Below, one piece after another: positions 1 to 61,770 of a stretch of DNA of 64,000 nt; the first letter of the stretch is position 1, and every line of letters starts with the position of its first letter. The position numbers were made by a program, and so were the translations under genes. The DNA comes from Rhodosorus marinus CCMP1338 (lineage: Eukaryota; Plantae; Rhodophyta): assembly GCA_029953675.1 (NCBI GenBank), contig JAMWBK010000003.1, positions 558,001 through 622,000 on the forward strand, given 5' to 3'. The notes under the pieces were generated by a model. It did no database searches. It saw only the letters and a program-made list of their open reading frames with translations, and had not been told where the DNA came from.

Positions 1-592
1 TCCTAAGAACCGTGCAGCAGCAGTTCTCAGGAGCCAGTACAGGAGTCGGATGCGGGATTGGAATAGGCTATGGAGTCGGAATTGGCTTAACTTACGGAAG
101 AGGTGGCGAAGGAATGGGTATGGGTGGAGGTATGGGTGGTATGATGGGTGGCATGGGTGGTATGGGTGGTATGGGTGGTATGGGTGGTGGTATGGGTGGA
201 ATGGGTGGAGGTATGGGCGGCATGGGAGGTGGGATGGGTGGTATGGGCGGCATGGGAAGTGGTATGGGTGGCATGGGAGGAATGGGAGGCATGGGAAGTG
301 GAATGGGTGGTGGAGCCGGTGGGATGATGCAAGGTCAAATGTCGCCTGGTAATGTATATCAGAGAACTATCTACTTTGTCTCTTGTTTGATGATGACTGT
401 ACTGACACTCAACCCGATCCAACGCGTTTAGGTATGGCGGGTGCCGCTGGTGCAACTGGTGGAGTACGGCCTGACACGCAGAGGCTCGACAACATCGAAA
501 GAAGACTGGATGAAATAGACAAAGCGCTGGGCATTCACACGAAACTACAACAGATAGAGGAGAAGCTGGACAAAATTGGAAAGAGAAGATAG
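1..592 (+). CDS. Gly/Met-rich low-complexity protein (GGM repeats) with N-terminal glycine-zipper-like segment and C-terminal coiled coil; 5'-truncated by window edge; intron 349-431
   Basis: The frame stays open upstream of the GTG at 12, so the true start is off-window. It reads GVGCGIGIGYGVGIGL then (GGM)n. A GT(349)...AG(431) intron with a CTGAC branch-like site joins it in frame to GMAGAAG...RLDNIERRLDEIDKAL...KRR-stop(592). Confidence 0.75.
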
Positions 593-1982: not shown

Positions 1983-2055
1983 CACCGACCGTGGGGCTCG
2001 AACCCACGACCACAAGGTTAAGAGCCTTGCGCTCTACCGACTGAGCTAGGCCGGC
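1983..2055 (-). tRNA. tRNA-Lys(CTT)
   Basis: The reverse complement GCCGGCCTAGCTCAGTCGGTAGAGCGCAAGGCTCTTAACCTTGTGGTCGTGGGTTCGAGCCCCACGGTCGGTG folds into a 73-nt cloverleaf with anticodon CTT and intact A and B boxes. Confidence 0.97.
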
Positions 2056-3044: not shown

Positions 3045-3117
3045 GCCTCCTTGGCTTAGTGGTTATAGCGTCGGTCTTGTAAACCGAAGGTCCCGAGTTC
3101 GACTCTCGGAGGGGGCT
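3045..3117 (+). tRNA. tRNA-Thr(TGT)
   Basis: GCCTCCT.../AGGGGGC acceptor stem, TCGGT-CTTGTAA-ACCGA anticodon arm (TGT) and GTTCGAC T-loop; 73 nt. Confidence 0.96.
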
Positions 3118-21149: not shown

Positions 21150-22130
21150 CTACCTCCGCTCTAGAGGGTTCAATTCTGTACAAAGTCGCAAGAGTGATTC
21201 CCTCGGTGCAGTCCCAAGGCGAGAATTGTTATTCCCAAAACTGTTCGGCGCTCTTAAAACAGGAAGACCTTGATCAGGAGCAAGAGGTATCTTTTCCATT
21301 CCCGAAGGAAACGGAGGTAGCAGGTTCGACGCCGCTGGGAGAGCGCTTGAAGCGAAGAGAGCGCTTGTTGGCGGGAGTGCGATAGATTCCGCCAGTGCGT
21401 TGGATGACGGAAGTGCGCTAGAGGCCAAAAGAGTGCTAGATGATGGTAACAAGCCATCGTGCCTCTCAAATTGTGGTGATTTCCTCGAGGTCGGAATTCG
21501 TTCCGCTGGATAGAGGTTTGAAATATTGGGCAGGCTGTTGTACAATTCGGGCGCTAGAGGTGACAGCGCCAGTTGGCACGCACTGTCCGGGGCATTCAAC
21601 TCCAGTGACGCAGGAGAATCAGCAAAGTACTTCCCACTAGCGTCGACACCGTTCCGAAACCTCAAGTGCGCCGTTCGTTGCTGCCTGGCAACCTTCAGTT
21701 CACGTGAATCGACTGAGCATTTTGACGACATCGAGTCGTTCTTAAGGAACGGATCTGTAGAAGGTTCATTTGGAATCCCAGGAATGCGATTCTCCTCCTT
21801 CAGCAAGCGTCCTTCTTCCTGCCGCACAAGTCCATCAATTCCATTCCCCCGAGAACTCCACCCCTTATCTGTTGCCTCTTTTGAGCTGACTTCTACCTCT
21901 CGATGGGTTTGCATATGACTCTTTAAGGAAGACCTCCATTTGAACACGCGGTCGCAGCCTTTCTCCGTACACCTGAATGGGTTGCTCCCCGTATGAACTC
22001 TTCTATGATTATCTACGCAGTACCGATACTTAAACATTTTGTTGCATATCTCACAAGCAAACCTCTCCCCAACCCTTGCAGAGGAAGAGGGCTTTTTCCT
22101 CTTCAGCCCAACTTCCTTCGCAGGCCCCAT
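21150..22130 (-). CDS. C2H2 zinc-finger transcription factor (2 fingers, N-terminal), intronless
   Basis: FACEICNKMF...NHRRVHTGSNPFRCTEKGCDRVFKWRSSLKSHMQTH, a basic NLS (KRKK) and a Ser/Pro-rich tail. First ATG at 22130. Confidence 0.9.
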   Translation of the reverse strand: MGPAKEVGLKRKKPSSSARVGERFACEICNKMFKYRYCVDNHRRVHTGSNPFRCTEKGCDRVFKWRSSLKSHMQTHREVEVSSKEATDKGWSSRGNGIDGLVRQEEGRLLKEENRIPGIPNEPSTDPFLKNDSMSSKCSVDSRELKVARQQRTAHLRFRNGVDASGKYFADSPASLELNAPDSACQLALSPLAPELYNSLPNISNLYPAERIPTSRKSPQFERHDGLLPSSSTLLASSALPSSNALAESIALPPTSALFASSALPAASNLLPPFPSGMEKIPLAPDQGLPVLRAPNSFGNNNSRLGTAPRESLLRLCTELNPLERR

Positions 22131-25100
22131 ACTCCCTAAAAAAGCGCTCACTAAAGCCGTTCACGGACAGTCCGTCGGCATGAAAGCCATCCGCCAACCC
22201 TCCAAAATCCCGAACCTAACAACCCTACGATCCTTTCCGCCTAACACCCGGAACTTCCTCAGCCCCCCAACACTGCTCACCCAAATACTCACACTCAAGA
22301 TCTACACAATACCTTCCCACGACCAAATGTCCATTCGCTTGCACAATCCCAAAAGTTTTGCACGTCACCCGGAACAAATACCGAGGACGATAAGAACAAA
22401 ACAATTTAATTCCAATTCGGTTACAAAAAAAAAAGGGTTCTACTTCCCGACGTAAAAATCCCCCCGCCCTCGACTAACTTGCTCGCCCCAAAATCCTGCT
22501 CACCCGCCAACGACTTAACTTCCCCCCCTCCCCCGCTCGACAATCAGCTATCACCTACGTATGCTCTCTAAAATACTCAGCTCTGCCAAAGCTTTGCCCT
22601 CTCAACCCCTCAACCAGAACGACACTCAGGAGTGACCAACGAAACAGAAGAAAAAGAAGAAAGAGATAAAACCCGTTGACCCATTCTCTCTCCCCCCCTC
22701 CTCCCCTTCCCTCCTCTCTATTCCTCCTGAATACAAAAAAAAATAACCCATTCGCGAGCTTCCACAAAAAACCAGGTCCACTTTTGCGATCCATTCTCTC
22801 TCCCTCTTCAGTCCCGGATAGCGAGTGTATCGAACAGTTTTGAAAGGAAAACTTCCCCCCGTAAATCACTTTCTATATGTACCGACAAAAGGTTTTGGAT
22901 CCAAAATAATTAGAGAAAAATCAAAAATTTGAAAAACTTGCTGACCAAGTAAACATGTCTTTACATATTGTCCACGTGGGAGCGACTCTTCACCATCGGA
23001 CGGTGTGGAGGTGGGGGAGGGGGGGTGAAAAGTTGGTTGAAATTTTTATTGTGCGATGGACTAGGAGGAGAAAGCTGTTTTTTTTTGTTTTGGACCCTAG
23101 AAAACAAAAATTCGAGTCAATAAACTAACTCGTTTGGAAAGTAATTATTGGAGGACTTTTGGAAAAATTTCTGGACATTGAGTACCAAAAGACTCTCGAA
23201 CGGTTTCTGTTTTACAGAAGTTGGAAAATTAAACGCGAGCAATGGTTTTGCTACAACAGTCTCCCCTCATGGCCACTTGGTGCGCTATTTCTTTCACAAT
23301 ATGAAGAATATAGTGAACTAACCAGGGTGGGTGTTTTTCATATTTTTTCGGGAATAGGACGATTGCACTTCAAATGCCACCCACGCAAGCAATGGGAGGG
23401 GGAGCGGGGGGGTAGTGGATATTCGGTCGCATCATGAGCGGGGGAAGGTTCGTCATTTTGAGTAGACCAACAACGCTGGGCTAAATTGATCATCAGCAGG
23501 GGCTTGGTGGGGAAAATTCAGATGTGGTTATATTTTCTTGAATTTGAATCTTGGGGATTCTGAAAAAATTGCAACCCACGTCCGTATCTTCAGTATGCCG
23601 ACAGATGGACGTGGAACATGACCTCGCCCTTGACTCTGGGGACTCCAATAATGTTGAATTTGAAACAATTTGTCCATTCGACGGAACTGGGGGAGGGTAC
23701 AACACGTTGCTTTTGGGTTTTTTTATTTTCATGATAGGTTCGTGGAATGCTCATGGCATTTTGATATGACGTACTCTTCCGGGTAGGATACTGACATAAG
23801 AGGGACGAAACTGCACATAAATTTAGCAAAACTCAAGAAATTAGCCAGTAACACGCACGCTGATATAGGGGTGGCTGACATATGCTCCCCGGGGGGGTCT
23901 TTGCGACCATATGCATCTTTGGGTTTTGTTTTTTGTTAAATAAAATTCCCTCGTAGAGCAGAACAACACTCCTCTCAAGAAAAAAATTGCTCGGTCCGGT
24001 TGAGCTTCTTTTTTCGAAACCCCAGCTTCCCCCCTAGCTAATAATCTGAATATTTTATTGCGTATAAATGAAAACTGAAGTGCGACATACGACAGGAACG
24101 TAATGCTTTGTCTGCTTCTGATAGATTCTATTTCCCGTGAAGTTGACTAATTTGTTTTGCGAATTCAACGGAAATCCAATAACGGCCGGTTTTTTTTCCC
24201 CAATAAGAGGCACGACTCATGCCAACTACAAGCTCCATCTTTTATGCATCTTATCTTGTATTCCACCTCATGGTCTAGAATATACAAAAAAAATCCAATC
24301 ACAATTTTGCCCTGGTTGTTCTTGTTTGCTTAGCGTGGAGGCGGAGGAGGACAGATCGGAGAATTCGATGACCTGTTTGCATTTCATTTGAAGACCAGGC
24401 AATGAATTAGATAGAAAAGTTAAGGGGAGGCGTGGAAGTGTGTGAAATAGTGAAAGATAATATCTAATCTAGTATAAAAAGAGCGCGCAGCCTTTTTCTT
24501 TTTTTTGCAAGGGGGCCAGTCCCACCTCCTCCAAGAATTGAGGAAAAAAATATTTATATATGAATGGTTTTGTGAGCTCGCATTTTTCGAGGCACTTGAA
24601 TAGAGGGAGCCGGATGACATTGATTGCTATTCTTGCACAAGAAGGTGGGGGGGGGGGATGGCGAAACAACCAGTGCTTCCAAGCTTTTGTAAGCCACCGA
24701 ATTAGAAAAGAAAATGATTCAAGACTTCCGAAATAGACGCGATCGATTTTCCAATTGGTCGATCAATATACAAGTACATTTATCCAAGCGGTGAGAGCTG
24801 GGCTGAAGTTTCCGTGCGCAGTGTGGTTTGCGGTTAGTCCAAAGAGGGCACTGGGCAATCTGACGTCCTCATATAATATTTCTTCAAGGGTAAAAGGACG
24901 GAACTTTTGCATGTAAAAGAGCTGGTTCAACCAGACCGCCCCGCTGAGTAGAAAGAATCCATCCGATCTCTACTCCCACAACTGTAGGTCTCTTGCTCCT
25001 TCACGCCTTCATCTTGTGCTAAGAGGAGAGTGCGCTTCCCATGCTGCCAAAGCGATTGGAACTTTCTAGGAACGGGAAGAGGATCAGCTTATGGCCTACG

Positions 25101-33744: not shown

Positions 33745-34473
33745 TCAAGGAGGATTCATCTTCAATGCGCTCCCTTTTTCCGATCGACTCGGGTTGTGGA
33801 ACTTATTTACGTGGTAGGTCATCGAGGACCTCCATTTGCACCGAAAATCGCAATATTGACATTGGTGCTGCTTCAAGTCAGTATGTGCAATGTTATGAAT
33901 CTTGAGCAAGTATGGATACCTCACTCGTTTGCCACATACTTTGCACGTTCGGTCGTCCACCGACCCAGTCGTGGGTGACTCTGGAGTATTTACGCTTGCG
34001 GACGCCATCGGTGGCGTGGAAGGGAAATTCTCAAGGTTGTCAAGATTCAATCCTTCGCCTTCATCGGATTGCATTATCAACGTATCAAATCCTTGGACAT
34101 GAAAATCTGCATCCATTGGCTTCTGTTCCTGTTCCTGAGCCAGTTCCTCTACCACTGTCTTCTCTTCCTGTACACCCTGTGAGACGTCCAACATGCTACT
34201 GTCGTCCACAGCTACCAGGGCTGAGTCCAGTTGTACATCCTTCGGTTCCACTTCGGCTGGGAAGCTTGGAGCCATTTCTACCACTCTGGGTTCGTTCTCA
34301 CCAACGCGGGGGGATTCCAGCCCTGCAACAGATTGTAAAACCTCATCCAAAACTTGCATGAATTCTCTCTCACCAATGCTTCGGCTAGATGTAGCTCCGT
34401 CGGGTTTATTCTGCAAGGGACCCCCATCACCCTCAGAGCTCATAACGTAATCCGCAAGATCAAGCGACAACAT
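33745..34473 (-). CDS. C2H2 zinc-finger transcription factor (2 fingers, C-terminal; acidic N-terminus), intronless
   Basis: CKVCGKRVRYPYLLKIHNIAHTDLKQHQCQYCDFRCKWRSSMTYHVNKFH; ATG at 34473. Confidence 0.88.
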   Translation of the reverse strand: MLSLDLADYVMSSEGDGGPLQNKPDGATSSRSIGEREFMQVLDEVLQSVAGLESPRVGENEPRVVEMAPSFPAEVEPKDVQLDSALVAVDDSSMLDVSQGVQEEKTVVEELAQEQEQKPMDADFHVQGFDTLIMQSDEGEGLNLDNLENFPSTPPMASASVNTPESPTTGSVDDRTCKVCGKRVRYPYLLKIHNIAHTDLKQHQCQYCDFRCKWRSSMTYHVNKFHNPSRSEKGSALKMNPP

Positions 34474-40400: not shown

Positions 40401-43364
40401 GGTGATGAAGGAAGTCTGAGAAACATTATGCCTCTCTCCTGTCACTCGTTCATGTCTTGCTGGTATCCGCGTGAACCAAATGGAAGGTGAACGCCCTAAT
40501 TCATTCGAGTTGATTGGCTCCGTCACGTTCCCACAAGGTTTTCCTCCCCTGGTCAGATTCTGAAGGAGGGTCGCAATCTGCGAACTAAGTGGTCTTTCGC
40601 GCAGTTGAAACATTTAACTGAACCAACTAGATCTTCACAAAACTCAAAACTTTCTGTTATCCCAAATCCCACATAGTAGTAGGAGAGCTTGAAAGTCAGC
40701 CGACTGCCTTTCGCGCAACTCCCGTCAAGACTCACAGCCCCCGTATCCAAGCGCGCCGGTATGCGCCCGAGAAGACAAGGAAAAGCAGCCGCCCACCTAC
40801 TGATTAAGCTCACGCAAACGACGAAGGACGACTTCCACCTGGGCAAGAAAAAGCATATTCAGGAAGCAAATTTCAAGATTTGAGACAAACCTGGCTTCCA
40901 TGCCTGTCTAGTCCCTCTATCATCTCTAGATATTGAATGGAAAACAAAAACTACGCAACATCCTAAAGCAACTTGGAAGAAAACAACTTTTCTTTCGTGT
41001 TTCCTGTCGCTTGCGGCGAAGAATCCTGAGATTCGCTGTTGTTGGATAAAAACCCTTAGATGATCCCATTGGCTTTCATAGTTGCATCATGCAATCCACA
41101 GCTCGGGGGGGAGTGGAAGTTGCTTGCGTTTCCGGTTTTACTCTAGTGTAGCCGCCTGCCAAGGTGTGGTCCCTCTTGCCTGAAATTGTCTGCAGTGAAT
41201 GTAAACATGCAGATACACAGGAGAGAGAGGCGAAGCAGGCAAGCACGATCCCTTACCGTCCTGGCACTTGAGTATCCACTCACGAACAGGAGCGCGGAGC
41301 GCTCTCTGAATAAACGGATCATACAGGAGTGCGTCGAGCAACGTGAATGTAGATGTGGGTGCCAATAACTTGTGCATGCGATACCTCCTCCCAGATACTC
41401 TTTGATTTGTTTCCTCCAAGAAAATACTAGAATTCAGGATACTTTCGTAGGGAGGAGCCGGGGGGGGGGGAAGGCGGGGGTGGCTGGAGCGGACGTCGTT
41501 GACCCTCTCCTTTTCCTTTTAAAAAGTTTTCCAAATATTCAATTATGGAGATTTTGGAAAGGGTTTTTTCCTGTGTTGCCTTTTCTAGAACAGCTGAAAA
41601 CAGGGACAAGAGTTTTTTTTACCCATTCTTGAATAAATACTCTTTCCGTTGGCTTGAGTGCCAAGACGCGTAAGGAAAAAGAAGAAGAAAAAAGGGGGGG
41701 TGGAAATAATAATATAATCAACTCGATGAGCAAGCGCGGGAGAGTTGCGCATAGAGACAAAAGGGTGGGTAGGGAGGGGTATATAGGTGAAAGGAGCTAC
41801 CTTGCCAATCATCATCGTCAATAGACTAGGTGAAAAGCCCACTTCAACCGGGGTCTTTCAAGCATAAAAAAAATTAAATCTGAATAACCACCGAACGGCT
41901 ACGACGGGATTCTCGGTGTATCTGCGCATTAGTAGTGTCTGCTAACGATTGAATCAACCCCATTGGCCGTTTTCGAGAACAATTGATGGTGGAAGAGAAA
42001 GACCCGTTCAAATTTTTTTTTCATTCTTCTGAGCAGTCCAAAAAAGGACAGGTTTCCTCGATTCCCCAACAGCAAAGTAGATAACAAAAAACAAAAGATC
42101 CTCAATTTCCTTTTGGGGGAAGCCAAATCGTTACATGATTGGATAATGGAGTCACGCTAAGTCGAATAGGAGGAGGACAGACTGCAGAAGCTTGGAGGAG
42201 GGGTAGGGAACCAAAGAACACTTGCTCCACAACATAATTTGCTAAAATATTTAAGCATTATGTGGATATGACATCCGCAAGTGAAAGGGGCTAGAGGTGT
42301 TTGAAAAAGCTAAAAACATTAAAAAAAACTTCAGCACAGAAATTTTGATAAATAAGCAAAAAAGAGGATGGAATCGCAGCCCTGAAATTTGCACTAAAGG
42401 CCACCCCCCCTCCTTCCAACAGAATTTTGTCCTTTCCGTGATTGCGTTTCATGACAATGGAATGATTGATTTACAAGGAATTCCTGAACTGTTGGGAAAT
42501 TGTTTTTAACATCACAGACGACGTTAAAAAAAACAAAACTGGGTGTTACAACAGTTTGGGGGGGGTGTGTGTGCTGAGCTTGATTTTTCGTTTCTTTTCT
42601 GGTGGTTGGCAGATTTCGGATTTTTCCTTCTCGTAAAGCTGTGTCAGTCATCGTGAAGGCAATTGTAAGTCAAGAAAAGGGGGATGTCGGAATGGGTGAT
42701 CGTTGCACATACAATTCTCACGCAAGGCCTAACTGTTTGTTCTGTTGGGCTTTAAATACATGAAATATTTTTAATAAAAGTAAGTATTAGTGAAAACTAC
42801 CCCCTAAGTTCTTCATATTGGCGTTTTGTAGCTTCTCTATGAACCCCTCGCGCGGTTGCTCTTTTTTGGGCGCGGAAGGGAGATGTTGCTCATTGATTGT
42901 TGACGCTGGTTTTCTAGGCAACTAAATAAATCGCAGAAATTTTGAAGGGCTCTTGGGCTCAGCGGTTGCTGTTTTCGTGTTAGTATTTTCGTTGTGGTTC
43001 TGTGGGTATTTGTGTGATTAGCTTTGGGAGGGGCTGGACGCACACATTGTTATAGATGTTGCTCATCATGAAAAGGCGAGCCGGTGGTTGAGGGAACGGT
43101 GTAGAGGGCAAAGAGCTAGGAAGTGGACGAGGTGATTGTTCGGGGAAGCAGTAGAGCTATTGTGGATCGTCGTTGATCTTGACCCGATCGCCGAGGTGAG
43201 ACTTGGGTGAAGTCTGGTTGGTTTTGTGGGGCGATTGCTTAGAGCGCTGACCTGGGGGCCGGGGTGCGCTTTTCCAGGACGTAGAGCTGTTGTATCCACT
43301 GTGTGTGATTAAGCCTCTGCTGGCAGTGAGATTGGGATTTTTGGACTGGACTAGGTATTTAACT

Positions 43365-43805
43365 ATGAGACGCATCCTCGTGGAGGTCAGAGAGGGAAAG
43401 GGCAGGGTATTTGTGTGCCCTGTTGAAGGATGTCGAAAGGAGAGCAGTCGGAAGTACAACATTCAAGCTCACATGAGGATTCACACTGAGCAAACACCTT
43501 ACATTTGTGTATTTTCTGGATGCGGAATGTCCTTCAAATGGCGCTCGAGCTTGGTGAATCATGAACGATACCACAAGAGGGATGGAAGCGGTCAAGATAT
43601 GTTGGAGAAAATGAACGAAAGGGCTGACGATGGGAACAACCGGAATGCACTTGACCGGGTACTATCAAGCAGCTCAGCGGTGACAGTGGAGAGCAACGAT
43701 GGCAATCAAAAAACTGTTGAAGATGAACGGGAGCAGTTCTACGTCGCCGTAATCCTGGCTGAGAACTTGCACAAGGGAGGTCAGCTCGGAAGTGCTTGTA
43801 ATTAG
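43365..43805 (+). CDS. C2H2 zinc-finger transcription factor (2 fingers)
   Basis: FVCPVEGCRKESSRKYNIQAHMRIHTEQTPYICVFSGCGMSFKWRSSLVNHERYH; first ATG at 43365 (an upstream exon is possible). Confidence 0.88.
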   Translation: MRRILVEVREGKGRVFVCPVEGCRKESSRKYNIQAHMRIHTEQTPYICVFSGCGMSFKWRSSLVNHERYHKRDGSGQDMLEKMNERADDGNNRNALDRVLSSSSAVTVESNDGNQKTVEDEREQFYVAVILAENLHKGGQLGSACN

Positions 43806-55801: not shown

Positions 55802-56341
55802 TCATCGGTTATGACCGTGATAGGTTCTCATGTGCTCAAGTTGAGCGTCCCGTCCTGTGAAAACGCTGCTGCAGTTTCGCTCGGGGCAACTGAGTAGGCT
55901 GCCAAGCGTGTCGGGACCAAGAGGACCCGAAAATCTGATCTCCGTGTAGAAACCATCGTTCTCCCGAAGAGTCAGGTTCATGTTCTCCTCTTCGTCCGCT
56001 GGTGTTCTCAGCAGAGTCGTAATGTCCCCTTTCGATGTCGCCGTCCCATGCTTTGGGACATCCTTGGCCGTTTCCGCGTCCTTCTTCGAAGGGTAATGGT
56101 ATCTCTGATGATTAAGAAGCGTAGATCTCCATCGAAATTTCATGCCGCAGCCATCAATTTCACACTTGTATGGGAGTTCTCCAGTGTGCGTACGCATATG
56201 AATCACACGATTGTACTTCCTATTAAACTCCCTGTCGCATCCTTCAAAGAAGCACTTGAAAATTCTGGGGCTGGCTTCCCCATGACCCCCGCTCAGCCGT
56301 TTTGCGTTCTTTCTCCTCAAAACTGTTTCGTTCTCCTTCAT
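55802..56341 (-). CDS. C2H2 zinc-finger transcription factor (2 linked fingers + 1 isolated C-terminal finger)
   Basis: FKCFFEGCDREFNRKYNRVIHMRTHTGELPYKCEIDGCGMKFRWRSTLLNHQRYH ... SCPERNCSSVF.....EHMRTYH; first ATG at 56341. Confidence 0.9.
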   Translation of the reverse strand: MKENETVLRRKNAKRLSGGHGEASPRIFKCFFEGCDREFNRKYNRVIHMRTHTGELPYKCEIDGCGMKFRWRSTLLNHQRYHYPSKKDAETAKDVPKHGTATSKGDITTLLRTPADEEENMNLTLRENDGFYTEIRFSGPLGPDTLGSLLSCPERNCSSVFTGRDAQLEHMRTYHGHNR

Positions 56342-59300
56342 CAAGCTCAAATTATACGGCCGCGCACCGGCGCCGCAACCCCTCAGACTTCCCCCGAGGC
56401 GGATTTGTCACTCCCGCGCCTCACCACCCATCGACCAAACAACACAGCCGACTCCACCACCGACCCTACGGATCCGCAGGCGTACTACACTTTGGTTTAA
56501 ACGCTGCCACCATGATCCCTCACTACCCCCCACTTCCGCAACCTATACCAGCCAACAACCTCCTCACCTACCCAACTTTACCTACCCCCATAAACACAAT
56601 TTCGACCCATTCCAATCCTTATCACAGCAGCGAGCGTAACCGTTAAAGCAGCAGGCAAAAGCTCATGGGACGGGTTTTTTCAAATCGCTACTGTGGAGCG
56701 CTCGGACAAAGCTTTGTTTCACGTTCCTCCTTGGCCTCTACCACACAAACAAGCCAGCCGCTAACCCCTCAGGCTCGCCTAGATCACAGATGAATCCACG
56801 AAATCGTCAACAATCAAGCGGCCAGCAACGCCGAAAAAAGAAACGCGAATGCGGAAACAGTAAACAACCTATATCCCAACTACCAAAACCCGACAACAAC
56901 AAAACCCCTCAAACGTTTTGCTGACTAACAAACTCGGTGGGGTGGGGATCCCATTTTACCTGTTAACTGATTTAGATAATTCATTAGAATCGATTATTTT
57001 TCTCTACTTTTTGGTTTGATTCATTGTATCTCATTCAAAGATAGGACATTTTTGAGGAAAGGCAATATAGGTCCGTCATTCCCCCCCTGATTTCTCAACA
57101 CAATTTACGCAAAAACCGAGAACTCCCAAATTACGAGAAAACTTATGAGCGTATGACGAACTTATAAACAAGTCTAACTTACCCCTATTCCCATTTTATT
57201 TCCATGCTCTCTTCTCTTTCGTCCGGTCTATCCACGAATTGGCTTGTTTTTAATGAAAATATGAAGGCGTTTTTCTTACTAAATTGCTATAAAAACCATA
57301 CAGTTTCACGCCCCCAACAAGCTGAAAAGTGCAGCTACAAAAATCATCGTTTTTGTGCAATCGCAATTGTAAATAAATGATCTTAGACGACCTAAAAACA
57401 AGGGAAAAGTTTCTTCTTTTGGGGTGGGGGTTTGAGGCTTCGGCAATCGGATTAACAGACTCTACTTACAAAATCAATCAGACGAATTGAGGCCCATGGT
57501 TTGGGTCTTAATAATTGCTGAAAGTTTGATTATTGAGAATAAATCGGTCAATATCAGGAAAAAAAAGGTCGTTGGAAAGGGGGAGGGTGGTTTTTTTGTT
57601 GGTTCACTCTCGGGTGCGCTCGAATAATTCAGTTTATATTTTTAGGCGGTGAACAGTCAAAAAAAACATGAACTCGGAGCCGCGGTTGAGGTTTTCACGT
57701 AGCTAAGAAGCCCCTGCGTCTTGTTTTCTTTTGATCGAAACTTTTTTGATCAGATGAAACGCGTTGCCATGTGAGGGTGGCTTACTTTTCTTGCCAAAGA
57801 TGGGACCAAAACATGATTGGTTTTCTATTCCCTAACTGGTGGATGCGGTGTCAGTGCGTTCTTAGGTAGAACCTGACGCATTCAGAAGGGGGCATATAAC
57901 TCCAATCCTAAATTCTGGGCCGGAATGGTCCATTTCTGGTTTTTACTCTCCGTGAAGTGCAGTGGATCGTGGCAGCAGTACACAGCACGGAGCTCCATTC
58001 CATAGGAACAGACTTGCAGGTATCCATTTCGGGCCACTCGAAGGCTAACAGCAATGAAGGGAGAACTCACTCTCGACGCCACCTAAAAGATCAGTTGATT
58101 GAAAGCCCGTTCCAGGGTATAGCAACTCAAAACATGGATGATTTGACGTTGATTTCGCCATAAGAGGCCTATTGGTCTCGCAGAATATGGGAATGTCCTC
58201 GAGTTGCGAAGCAGTTCACTTTGTGAAATTGGCTTCTTCATACAATCATAAGGAGAATCCAGTATCTGTCGGAAGCTATACGAATTTCTGAACAGCCTAT
58301 AACAATGAGTACTCGGCGCACTGCGATAGGTGATGTTCTCGATTCATCTTGGAGAACCCCGTCCTCACAGTCTGTTGTCTATTGAGTGTTAGGGTCTCCG
58401 CTTCTGCAGGAGAGACATGTCCTACAAGCACATGGCACAACGACATTTGAGCCTTAGTAGCCGAATTCTATCCTCAAGACACCCAAAACGGTTGTTTCAC
58501 TTAGTCAAGACCCACAACGATCATACGCAAGTTAAACTCTTAGAAAATGGTTGATGAGTTTGCCAAAAAAGGGCGTTTCTGAGCTCTCTCAGGCGGGTTG
58601 CTCTTTTAGAGTCCGATCGTCGCGCTTCAACAGCCCACGCAGATTTCATGCAGCTTCCAAATTGGAACTGAACTGACAAAAAAAAATTCAGTTGTTCATT
58701 ACTTTCAATCAAAACTCTTTCCTCTCAGTAAATGCTTTGAGAAATGGAGTCGTGCTTTGCTTTTTGGTTGTCTTCCCCACCGCAAAACGACCTCTCGTCA
58801 AGTACGAAAAAAGGCAGGCGACCGTCCGAGTTGATCGTCCGAGACCAGATAAAATCCACAACAAGAAAAACAAGACTATCCCAATCCCTCTGCGAAACAA
58901 CATCAAAACGTGTTTCTCATCGCAAACTTAAAAGACTGCAGATTTCCAAGTTGAAAGACCAGCGACAAGAACACTTGAGGCGTTCGATTCAGCCCCCTCA
59001 CATTCACTCCAGCAGAGCTTTCAGAGACTTGCGGTCGGTCCTCTCTCCAACTTTCTATTCAGACACCGATTTACGCTCCCGCTAACTTGACGAATCACAA
59101 TTTGCCCTATTAGACATTAATCCATTCGCATATAATAATTGGCTTACCAGCTTACCAGGGAAGAAATTTTACTTATGCCGTGATTGGTTCAAACTCAAAA
59201 TTTGAATCGAATGAGAAACAGTTAAAAAATGATGGTAGAGCATGCTGACATCTATTGACCCCCCTCTCGGCCTATAATTTAGGCATACGACAATCACCAA

Positions 59301-59599: not shown

Positions 59600-60960
59600 T
59601 TGCAGCGCTCGGTTCAAGTGAGCGAGGGTTGAGAAGCACGTTTCCTTAGCTTCTTGGAGGGGCTAGAGCTGGAATCCTACTGAAGCGAGAAAGGATCAGC
59701 TGCATGTTGGATGTCGTCGTAATGCATGTATATGCGCGTTTTTACTGTGACAGCAAGGCTGGTATTGGGAACAGGATCAGCGGACCGAGTACCCCGTAGC
59801 CTTCATTCTGCGGATATTTGTGTCAGAATCGAGTCGGAGCGATCAGGCTTTTCGAACATGAGCCGAACCGAAGAGCAGGAATCGCAATTTTAGATACTTT
59901 TTTACCCAATGACCGCTTTCGAGTGCATGCGGACGGACAGTCTGTCAAGCGATTCACACCATGGGACACTTAGGAGTCGAGAACGAATGAAATGTGGTTT
60001 GTCAGTTTCTTGCATAGGGCAGTGTGGCTCTGTTTGTGTTGATCCATCCCACCCATCCATCCATCCTGAATTATATTTATGCGCGAGCATCTTAGCAGCA
60101 GCGGGACACGAGAAGATGTGGAGGCCCCTAGTCCCGTGAGATGTCAATGGTGGGATGATTCAGTGTTTGTTTCGTAAAGGAACTACCTGATCGGTTCGGA
60201 GTTCATGACCTCTGCAGAAACATTGTCTTGCTGTCCATATAATCCGATCGTGTCCATGATCGAGGTGCGGTCCACACTGCTTGGGAGACCGGTTGGAGGA
60301 GGTGATTGAGAGGTACCTAAATGGTTATCGTAGCTCTAGCTCCAGATTTGTGTGGTGTAGAACCAGATTTAAACGTGTCGGAAGGTTGCCCCAATGGAAG
60401 TCCATTCTGAGAGTCATCCTGGTCCACTTGAGGCTCTCTTCCAACAATTGACATATTGGATCTAAAACTAGTTATAGACATTTCTTCTAGAATAAGGCTT
60501 GTCCATGACGTACTATATTATGACCATATTCTAAAACTAAACCATCTTCGTCAGTGGCACTAGTCATGGCATTATTTTTGCCGGCTGCGGGAGAGCGCCG
60601 TGGATTTGCCGCGGCCAGTATGAGCGTCGCAAAGAGTTGAAACATGCTGGAGCTTTGTCTTCCCCAGGCATTTGTGCCTCGGCTCTAGCTCATCGCCTGG
60701 TACCTCTGGTCATTGAGTGCTTTGGGTTTATGGATTCCGTTGGCTCTCGTTGCCTGCGGGAATTGTTCCCCGAACGCCCTGACCGTCTGTCCTCGTTGTT
60801 TACCGGTTTTAAGTTTCTTGCTGTGGTGTATGAACGCTGCTTCGATGTTGGAGCCGCGCGATCTTCCACGCGCATAGTCTTGTTTCTTCCCTCGGGGTTT
60901 TTTCTTTCAGTCTCCGGACTCAACAAATTCATTCAGTTATGGCAGGAGGCTAGCTGACTT
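59600..60960 (+). mobile_element. Decayed CRE-like non-LTR retrotransposon 3' region
   Basis: FP*LLGGARAGI (cf. LP..GGLG), VEPDL, AAASMSVAK/ELKHAG, SALAHRLVPLVIECFGFM and LAVVYERC appear in element order, with stops and frameshifts. Confidence 0.55.
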
Positions 60961-61065
60961 CCTAGAAGTTTGTTTATGATGCTAAGTGGTGAGTGGCTTC
61001 CCGATGAGGTTTTCGTCTCCAGTCCCGGCCGAAGACCGGATGTTGGAGAGATAGTAGTCGGTGCT

Positions 61066-61770
61066 TTAGTAGGGTATCTCATGAGTAGCTCCCCTGCAAA
61101 ATTTGGCTCCAGAGTTGTGGATGAAATCCTCTCCGGGACCTGGTTTGAAACAAAAAGAAAACGAGGTGAGTTGATATATCTCCCCAGGTTTCGTTATGGA
61201 AACTCCCAGGCACACTCCTACTTACCTCCAGACTGATGAGGCCCCCATTTCCACCGGCGACAAGCGTATCTTTTCCCCTTTCCTCCTTTCTGTGATCCGC
61301 CACCTTGGAGGAGATCGTTTCCGTTCCCTCCATCGAGCCTGCTGATACCTGAGCTGTCAATCAACTTATCACTGCCGTCGCCTCAGTACAGTGCGTGCTA
61401 CCGTATAAAGCCACCGAGTGCTTATCGATGTCCTGGAGTTTATCGTCCCCGTAGTCCCCGCGTGGAACGTCTTCGTCCAATGCTCCGATCAGATCATCGT
61501 CACCTTCCCCACCGTTCAAGGTGTCACGGTGGTCCCCTCGTAGATCTTATCGTCTTCACTACCTGTAGCTCCTATCGCCTCGTCGTCGCCGTCGCCGCGG
61601 AAGATGCGATCGTCGCCTTCTCCAACAAACACTCGATCTTTTCCGTCTCCACCGTCGAGCTTGGTGTTCGATCCAATGCCCCGAAGCCGCTCATTCCCGG
61701 AGTAACCGTAGATAGTTGACAAAAACTCCGTCCCCTCGAGCTTATCGTGTCCCTTGGTGCCCATGCTGAT
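61066..61770 (-). pseudogene. Frameshifted gene with RTX / hemolysin-type Ca2+-binding nonapeptide repeats and one spliceosomal intron (61140-61225)
   Basis: GGxGxDxUx-like repeats: LDGGDGKDRV, VGEGDDRI, RGDGDDEA, LNGGEGDDDL, GDYGDDKL, GDGSDKL, LDGGNGNDLL, and GGPGEDFI across the GTAAGT...CCAG intron. About four frame changes are needed to join them. Confidence 0.75.

Follow-up and report, generated by a model that had tools for sequence, protein, structure and literature searches.

RTX proteins are defined by nonapeptide repeats that form a beta-roll, an uncleaved C-terminal signal of ∼60 residues, and genes for type I secretion (PMC3034196). The repeats are known as parallel beta-rolls loaded with Ca2+ (PMC3034196). 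The element described here is an array of RTX repeats in the nuclear genome of the red alga Rhodosorus marinus CCMP1338 (Stylonematophyceae; GCA_029953675.1, PMC10250338). The array lies on the minus strand of JAMWBK010000003.1, a eukaryotic nuclear contig of 3,353,001 bp, near one end of a stretch of 64,000 nucleotides (nt) that was analyzed as a whole and is referred to as the window; a window position plus 558,000 gives the position in the record. As judged from its sequence, the array is probably the decayed remnant, or pseudogene, of a bacterial-type gene for an RTX, or beta-roll calcium-binding, protein.

The likeness of the algal copy to bacterial RTX proteins (PF00353, PMC3034196) consists of tandem x-U-x-G-G-x-G-(N/D)-D nonapeptides in a strict 9-residue register and a Pfam match above cut-off. 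In contrast with these proteins, the algal copy resides in a eukaryotic nucleus, is composed of repeats only with no functional N-terminal domain, and has no recognizable C-terminal type I secretion signal, a signal for which there is no profile. The text after the last repeats, where the ∼60-residue signal would be expected, is broken by a stop and does not resemble the bacterial relatives. Linked type I secretion genes, encoding the ABC transporter, the membrane fusion protein (MFP), and the outer membrane protein (OMP), are absent from a Pfam scan of the minus strand at 60301-63300 and from the called genes within ∼15 kb. Instead of a single continuous open reading frame (ORF), the algal copy as assembled has text in three frames, with four frame changes, an in-frame TAA, and an intron-like segment, and it is only 33–43% identical to anything known.

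Solved beta-roll modules provide a second comparison. Among the sequences of the PDB, the 82-aa piece encoded by the first ORF of the array matches beta-roll blocks with E-values of 3.6e-9 to 8e-4, namely the RTX blocks of the Bordetella adenylate cyclase toxin-hemolysin (7usl, 7rah, and 6sus) and the R-module of the Azotobacter mannuronan C5-epimerase AlgE6 (2ml2), an alginate epimerase. The match, which is significant, covers the repeat scaffold only; the pore-forming, acylation, enzymatic, and capping segments have no counterpart in the algal piece. The sequence match suggests that the 82-aa piece, if expressed, would form the same calcium-loaded parallel beta-roll. An AlphaFold2 model of this piece from the single sequence without an alignment is uninformative, with a mean predicted local distance difference test (pLDDT) score of 40 and no secondary structure.

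The third comparison is with nuclear genes of prokaryotic origin in algae. In a survey of 23 algal (phytoplankton) species, such genes tend to lie in gene-poor regions, contain few introns, and have gained GT-AG introns of host size (PMC7190310). The Rhodosorus copy resembles them in its gene-poor site, few introns, a GT-AG intron candidate of host size, and host-adapted composition. It differs in that it is no longer intact and is an orphan with no identified ortholog, paralog, or donor, which makes the usual phylogenetic proof of transfer impossible here. The literature searched contains no paper that ties RTX repeats to Rhodosorus or to algal nuclear genomes.

The repeat array and its relatives

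The RTX text runs along the minus strand from 61764 to ∼60994, a length of ∼770 nt, and includes tandem Gly/Asp-rich nonapeptides of the pattern x-(L/I/F)-x-G-G-x-G-(N/D)-D. Motif scans described as covering 66 kb comprise the window and a flank of 2.3 kb from the locus record L002 (66.3 kb together), in which L002 4578-4981 corresponds to window 61764-61361. The six-frame translation of the 66.3 kb contains the strict motif GGxGxDxUx three times, at 61653, 61513, and 61331, always on the minus strand and each time in a different frame. A looser RTX pattern is found ten times, with seven of the ten matches at 61029-61653 on the minus strand and a background of three matches in ∼132,000 codon positions elsewhere. 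One thousand dinucleotide shuffles of 61066-61770 yield on average 0.018 strict and 0.07 loose matches, with maxima of 1 and 3, respectively.

Reading the text in its 9-residue register reveals ∼14–16 recognizable nonapeptides, eight of which agree with the consensus at 5/6 positions or better. Eight consecutive repeats follow each other without a slip in the first ORF, and roughly six and three in the next two pieces (Table 1). Several nonapeptides are degenerate at the Gly and Asp positions. The Pfam family HemolysinCabind (PF00353) matches the ORF at 61516-61764(-) with 34.3 bits (cut-off 23, E 2.3e-8), and the ORF at 61218-61364(-) with 16.1 bits, under the same cut-off. No other Pfam domain is present on the minus strand at 60301-63300, and no competing family matches the RTX text at E<=1, so that thrombospondin-type and other Asp-rich repeats were rejected. 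Searches for tandem and dispersed repeats detect no DNA-level repeats in or around the array.

Each piece was also compared in its own frame with 160 bacterial RTX proteins, taking the best single-domain score and 20 composition-matched shuffles of each piece as the control. Pieces 1, 2, and 3 score 39.7, 17.8, and 16.8 bits, against shuffled maxima of 6.0, 4.8, and 3.7; the three short downstream pieces are not significant alone in this comparison. The loose motifs at 61143 and 61029 share one frame within ∼250 nt, for which the background rate predicts ∼0.006, and the RTX text is on these grounds extended to ∼60994. The original prediction of at least eight nonapeptides on the minus strand, split over several frames and open to confirmation with the HemolysinCabind profile, is borne out by these counts. 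Its extent of 61066-61770 is correct as a location of minus-strand RTX text and too short by ∼70 nt at the low-coordinate end.

Table 1. Parts of the RTX locus, gene models, and neighboring retroelement fragment, in window coordinates
Feature	Position	Strand	Description
RTX piece 1	61519-61764	minus	82-codon ORF with the ATG inside the first repeat; eight nonapeptides in unbroken 9-residue register
RTX piece 2	61364-61546	minus	Second frame; NGGEGDDDL, RGDYGDDKL; degenerate towards the 3' end; strict motif at 61513
RTX piece 3	61272-61382	minus	Third frame; GDGSDKLID...DGGNGNDLL...GGKGK; strict motif at 61331
Short stretch of RTX-like text	61226-61282	minus	GKDTLVAGGNGG; yet another frame; from frame translations, not significant alone
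Intron-like segment, 86 nt	61140-61225	minus	GTAAGTAG donor, pyrimidine-rich tract, CAG acceptor; G+C content (GC) 0.43; phase 1
Downstream text	61069-61139	minus	One good nonapeptide, (G)GPGEDFIH; loose motif at 61143; not significant alone
Last RTX-like nonapeptide	60994-61029	minus	AGTGDENLIGKP; frame of 61069-61139, past the TAA; loose motif at 61029
59-nt "intron" implied by the deposited model	61504-61562	minus	Purine-rich, GTAGTG...GGGGAAG; takes out RTX text of pieces 1 and 2
Deposited gene model, 114 aa	61361-61764	minus	Public BRAKER annotation
Reverse-transcriptase fragment (RVT_1)	∼64.3-64.9 kb (L002 ∼1450-2040)	plus	Pfam 22.4 bits, cut-off 29.6; model positions 9-140 of 205

Four changes of frame occur along the RTX text, at ∼61537, 61390, 61272, and 61243, each at a short mononucleotide run, one of which is only two bases long. 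Piece 2 overlaps piece 1 at the first of these changes and gives way to piece 3 at the second. The changes at ∼61272 and ∼61243 bound the short RTX-like stretch, lie ∼30 nt apart, and cancel each other; the frame of piece 3 is open through 61226-61282, but the text in that frame is non-RTX. Further downstream, the text closes at an in-frame TAA (61066-61068), and the RTX-like AGTGDENLI at 61029 stands past this stop. Compared with the coding pattern of the family, the disabling changes in the assembled array comprise the four frame changes, the in-frame stop, and the degenerate repeats, with no further introns to bridge the frame changes. At the other end, a stop codon lies three codons upstream of the ATG at 61764, and an upstream exon was rejected as there is no host-like donor upstream of this ATG.

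The relatives of the array were sought in protein, genome, and contig collections. An exhaustive HMMER scan of 1.84 billion representative proteins returns 29,788 matches at E<=1e-3. The top matches are giant proteins of 1,300–6,900 aa with 33–43% identity, which dominate the ranking as their scores add up over 7–58 repeat stretches; because of this summing, the ranking names the family and not the donor. The ten best-scoring relatives were looked up, and all of those with an organism name are bacterial. The named relatives are annotated as "calcium-binding protein", "Ca2+-binding RTX toxin-like protein", and "S-layer family protein" and belong to Pontibacterium, Curtobacterium, Enterobacter, Aromatoleum, and Pseudomonas. 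No close relative of the RTX pieces is present in 185,579 prokaryote genomes or in metagenome contigs, which yield one match at 32% identity, and no relative is present in viral contigs.

The surface-protein family with paralogs that the original prediction envisaged finds no counterpart, as the 66 kb contain no second copy and the protein collection none that the search of it detected, a search of doubtful sensitivity. The word-index search of that collection with the 82-aa piece has no match, a weak null since the deposited product of 114 aa, which overlaps the piece and, in the only gene structure possible, has its first ∼67 residues in common with it, was also missed. Word-index nulls are weak for Gly/Asp-rich repeat queries.

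The RTX family is overwhelmingly bacterial, and to our knowledge its secretion system does not exist in eukaryotes. On account of this distribution, and as no related eukaryotic sequence was found in the collections searched, the ultimate origin of the RTX text is most likely bacterial.

The intron-like segment and the history of the array

Assessment of the 86-nt segment relies on a comparison with introns of the host. Rebuilding host exons from product lengths gave too many equivalent solutions, and the comparison set consists of six introns from kinase-like, ATPase, and other genes in the window, all flanked by long open frames. These introns are 76–108 nt long, begin with GTAAGT in five cases and GTGAGC in one, and all end in CAG or TAG, mostly behind a pyrimidine-rich tract. 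The segment at 61225-61140 has a donor identical to that of one host intron, a CAG acceptor, 73% pyrimidines in its last 30 nt, and a lower GC than the 56% GC text around it. Its donor is the sole site with at least 5/6 GTAAGT bases in 60980-61800(-), and as the array has no second host-like donor, introns cannot account for the other frame changes. Segments of 60–130 nt that start with GTAAGT and close with a YAG acceptor after a pyrimidine-rich tract occur only twice on both strands of the 66 kb; the second is the 76-nt intron of a kinase-like gene, as deduced from the flanking open frames. At two per ∼133 kb of strand, the expectation of such a segment falling in the RTX array by chance is ∼0.006–0.012.

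By coordinate arithmetic, the segment joins the GGNGNDLLQ frame to the GPGEDFIH frame in phase 1 and splits a Gly codon; over the 13 codons that precede the donor, the RTX-like text is in a frame other than the one that joins in phase. The segment combines GT-AG boundaries, the host donor consensus, host size, a pyrimidine tract, and an in-phase junction, the properties of a spliceosomal intron. On these features it is predicted, with the balance tipping modestly in favor, to be a once-functional intron of host type. The original prediction had described a host-size intron of 86 nt that splits a Gly codon ahead of GPGEDFI, in agreement with the donor, composition, and phase of the segment.

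The composition of the array is that of its host. GC at third codon positions is 0.60 in the RTX text versus 0.55 in host ORFs, the choice of Gly and Asp codons is nearly identical, and the 56% GC peak of the locus is accounted for by Gly and Asp codons. Given this host-like composition, a recent insertion from a high-GC bacterium was rejected. Together with the lack of a donor and the intron-like segment, this composition suggests a long residence and a period of expression in the host.

The history that we favor begins with a bacterial gene or gene fragment that would have entered the nuclear genome in a gene-poor stretch, either by horizontal transfer or with the cyanobacterial ancestor of the plastid, the less testable option; these two routes are indistinguishable because the repeats are too diverged. 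Transcription would then have lasted long enough for the gain of one spliceosomal intron of host type, at 61225-61140. In the working state, the repeats would have folded into a parallel beta-roll upon Ca2+ binding. The N-terminus (MGTKGHDKLEG...) is not hydrophobic and so lacks a signal peptide, on account of which the protein would have been soluble and intracellular. The adhesin proposed in the original prediction finds no support, given the absence of an N-terminal hydrophobic signal and of any other domain. After a loss of selection, bases would have been gained or lost singly at short mononucleotide runs, a premature stop would have arisen, and repeats would have degenerated. The present-day locus most likely does nothing.

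Several points weigh against an old pseudogene of bacterial type. The bacterial origin is drawn from the distribution of the family and not from a phylogeny, as repeats at 33–43% identity cannot carry one. The null for paralogs in the protein collection is weak, the word-index search having missed the 114-aa model. The intron call rests on sequence features and one downstream nonapeptide. Piece 1 retains an ATG, 82 open codons, and eight repeats in register, a degree of preservation that is high for an old pseudogene. All four frame changes coincide with short mononucleotide runs in an assembly based on Nanopore reads and polished three times with Illumina reads, so that residual errors may be present. 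Nanopore assemblies are error-prone at such runs, which are likewise sites of replication slippage.

The alternative that fares best, although unlikely, is a repeat-only fragment of bacterial DNA that was never functional after its insertion, with the 86 nt resembling an intron by coincidence or through a later insertion. A fragment of this kind would be in keeping with the abrupt start of the array, which has neither a domain nor an exon upstream and whose ATG comes three codons after a stop, and with the absence of a significant score for the text past the 86-nt segment when taken alone. It fits poorly with the rarity of intron-like segments quoted above and with the place of this one on the coding strand, in phase, at 43% GC within 56% GC, and with RTX motifs on both sides. 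The fully host-like composition is a further point against it.

The deposited gene model and the assembly

A locus that is still alive is rather improbable. It would take one of two forms, in which either the 59-nt stretch at 61562-61504 is spliced, an "intronization" rescue that yields a 114-aa protein, or the frame changes are assembly errors that conceal a two-exon protein of ∼200 residues. The first form is represented in the public annotation by a called gene at 61361-61764(-). NextDenovo was used to assemble the genome from Oxford Nanopore reads, and three rounds of Pilon polishing with Illumina reads followed; genes were predicted by BRAKER 2.1.5 with RNA-seq training, and the BUSCO score is 94% (PMC10250338).

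The 59-nt segment is the only single GT..AG segment that makes 61764..61361 a stop-free frame of 114 codons. It has a GTAGTG donor, a GGGGAAG end, and no pyrimidine tract, and it is shorter than all six host introns. It codes RTX text in both adjoining frames, and the point at which piece 2 begins to align with bacterial RTX proteins falls within it. Towards its 3' end, the model consists of degenerate text and closes at a chance stop, and an exact look-up of the 82-aa ORF finds no called gene on record.

A live short gene would require that the 114-aa model is right, with 59 nt of former coding text now spliced out, or that the 82-codon ORF is expressed alone as a calcium-binding peptide. An RNA-seq-trained predictor did call a gene here, piece 1 has an ATG, an open frame, and the best-kept repeats, and the GT..AG boundaries of the 59-nt segment give a tidy, repeat-like junction. 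Against these stand the GTAGTG donor and the purine-rich text of a segment that lacks a pyrimidine tract and falls below the host range of 76–108 nt, the RTX text that it codes in both neighboring frames, and the degenerate end of the model at a chance stop. The product also has no relative in the protein word-index, in the 185,579 prokaryote genomes, or, beyond the match at 32% identity, in metagenomes. With this evidence, a live short gene is distinctly unlikely.

Gene predictors routinely invent such introns to cross frameshifts. Because the 114-aa model needs a purine-rich 59-nt "intron" that removes RTX-coding text, it is most likely an artifact, predicted here to be the way in which the predictor circumvents the first frame break. 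The same kind of frameshift-crossing "intron" may occur elsewhere in the R. marinus annotation.

The second form of a living locus is an intact gene behind four uncorrected homopolymer errors of the Nanopore reads, that is, a real two-exon gene of ∼200 codons for a small, repeat-only beta-roll protein, with its ATG at 61764, an intron at 61225-61140, and the TAA at 61066. This explanation draws on the coincidence of every frame change with a short mononucleotide run and on the assembly of Nanopore reads with NextDenovo. It also draws on the two changes ∼30 nt apart that cancel each other and thereby leave the frame of piece 3 open to the donor and in phase across the 86-nt segment. The polishing in three Pilon rounds with Illumina reads and the 94% BUSCO score speak against it, as do neighboring genes, whose products have normal lengths and complete domain sets. 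Four residual indels in ∼300 nt of unique, 56% GC DNA are far above a plausible error rate, and one run has a length of just two bases. The decay also goes beyond indels, with repeats that are degenerate at calcium-binding positions and RTX-like text past the TAA. An intact gene is consequently very doubtful.

Genomic setting and meaning of the probable remnant

The RTX locus is 619 kb into the 3.35-Mb contig. The gene content of the window is eukaryotic, with two tRNA genes, C2H2 zinc-finger genes, and genes of the kinase-like, proteasome ATPase, and ceramide-synthase-like types that carry introns. The called genes on the low-coordinate side of the locus code for a C2H2 zinc-finger protein, a TLC protein resembling ceramide synthase, and a proteasome ATPase; all are eukaryotic, and the same applies to every called gene within ∼15 kb. 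The region of ∼10 kb from 56.4 to 66.3 kb, bordered by the zinc-finger gene at 55.8-56.3 kb, has no called gene except the 114-aa model.

On the high-coordinate side, only a reverse-transcriptase fragment is found, which is probably a decayed retroelement. Nested inverted repeats adjoin it (L002 1045-1215 and 1295-1458), with arms of 106 nt at 87% and 40 nt at 93% complementarity. The original prediction had placed retrotransposon debris next to the array; one such fragment exists, but it is 2.6–3.2 kb away, past the end of the window, and under its Pfam cut-off.

Bacterial contamination or a chimeric assembly, suggested by the typically bacterial nature of RTX repeats and by the bacteria carried in red algal cultures, is highly improbable. 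The locus is embedded in the 3.35-Mb contig with eukaryotic genes on its low-coordinate side, as the original prediction of a gene in a eukaryote requires; there is no long bacterial ORF, no bacterial neighbor gene, and no near-identical bacterial sequence, and the composition is host-like. A chance Gly/Asp-rich sequence or another repeat family, for which the locally higher G+C content and the richness in GGN and GAY codons might argue, can be dismissed almost entirely, being refuted by the shuffle controls, a Pfam score that exceeds the gathering threshold while no other family matches at E<=1, and the strict 9-residue period over eight repeats.

Other features of the window stand apart from the RTX locus. 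Four C2H2 zinc-finger ORFs, at 55802-56350(-), 43290-43805(+), 33745-34473(-), and 21150-22151(-), share an unusual finger, F(K/R)WRS(S/T)L..H.R.H, and look like a dispersed paralog family with a span of 35 kb. Two of the four are exact called genes in the public annotation, and two zinc-finger ORFs of the window, of 242 aa and 179 aa, are encoded exactly on the contig. The two tRNA genes (Rfam RF00005), at 1983-2055(-) with 66.7 bits and 3045-3117(+) with 68.2 bits, lie ∼1 kb apart on opposite strands. At the start of the window, the ORF at 12-431(+) is made up nearly entirely of GMGG(M) Gly/Met repeats and is low-complexity, coding-like text.

The array has consequences for the annotation of the genome and for the study of foreign genes in algae. 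The 114-aa "gene" in GCA_029953675.1 depends on an implausible 59-nt intron across a frameshift and is a probable annotation error. If the locus were alive, the red alga would use an intron-bearing, bacterial-type gene to make an intracellular calcium-binding protein of RTX type, and a live gene would represent an unusual eukaryotic use of the RTX beta-roll. As the probable pseudogene that is favored here, the locus appears to be a minor footprint of foreign-gene acquisition. It would illustrate cleanly how a foreign-type gene passes through its whole life cycle in an algal nucleus, from arrival in a gene-poor region through adaptation of composition and gain of a host intron to decay. Surveys of horizontal transfer count only intact survivors, and decayed cases such as this one would therefore go unrecorded.

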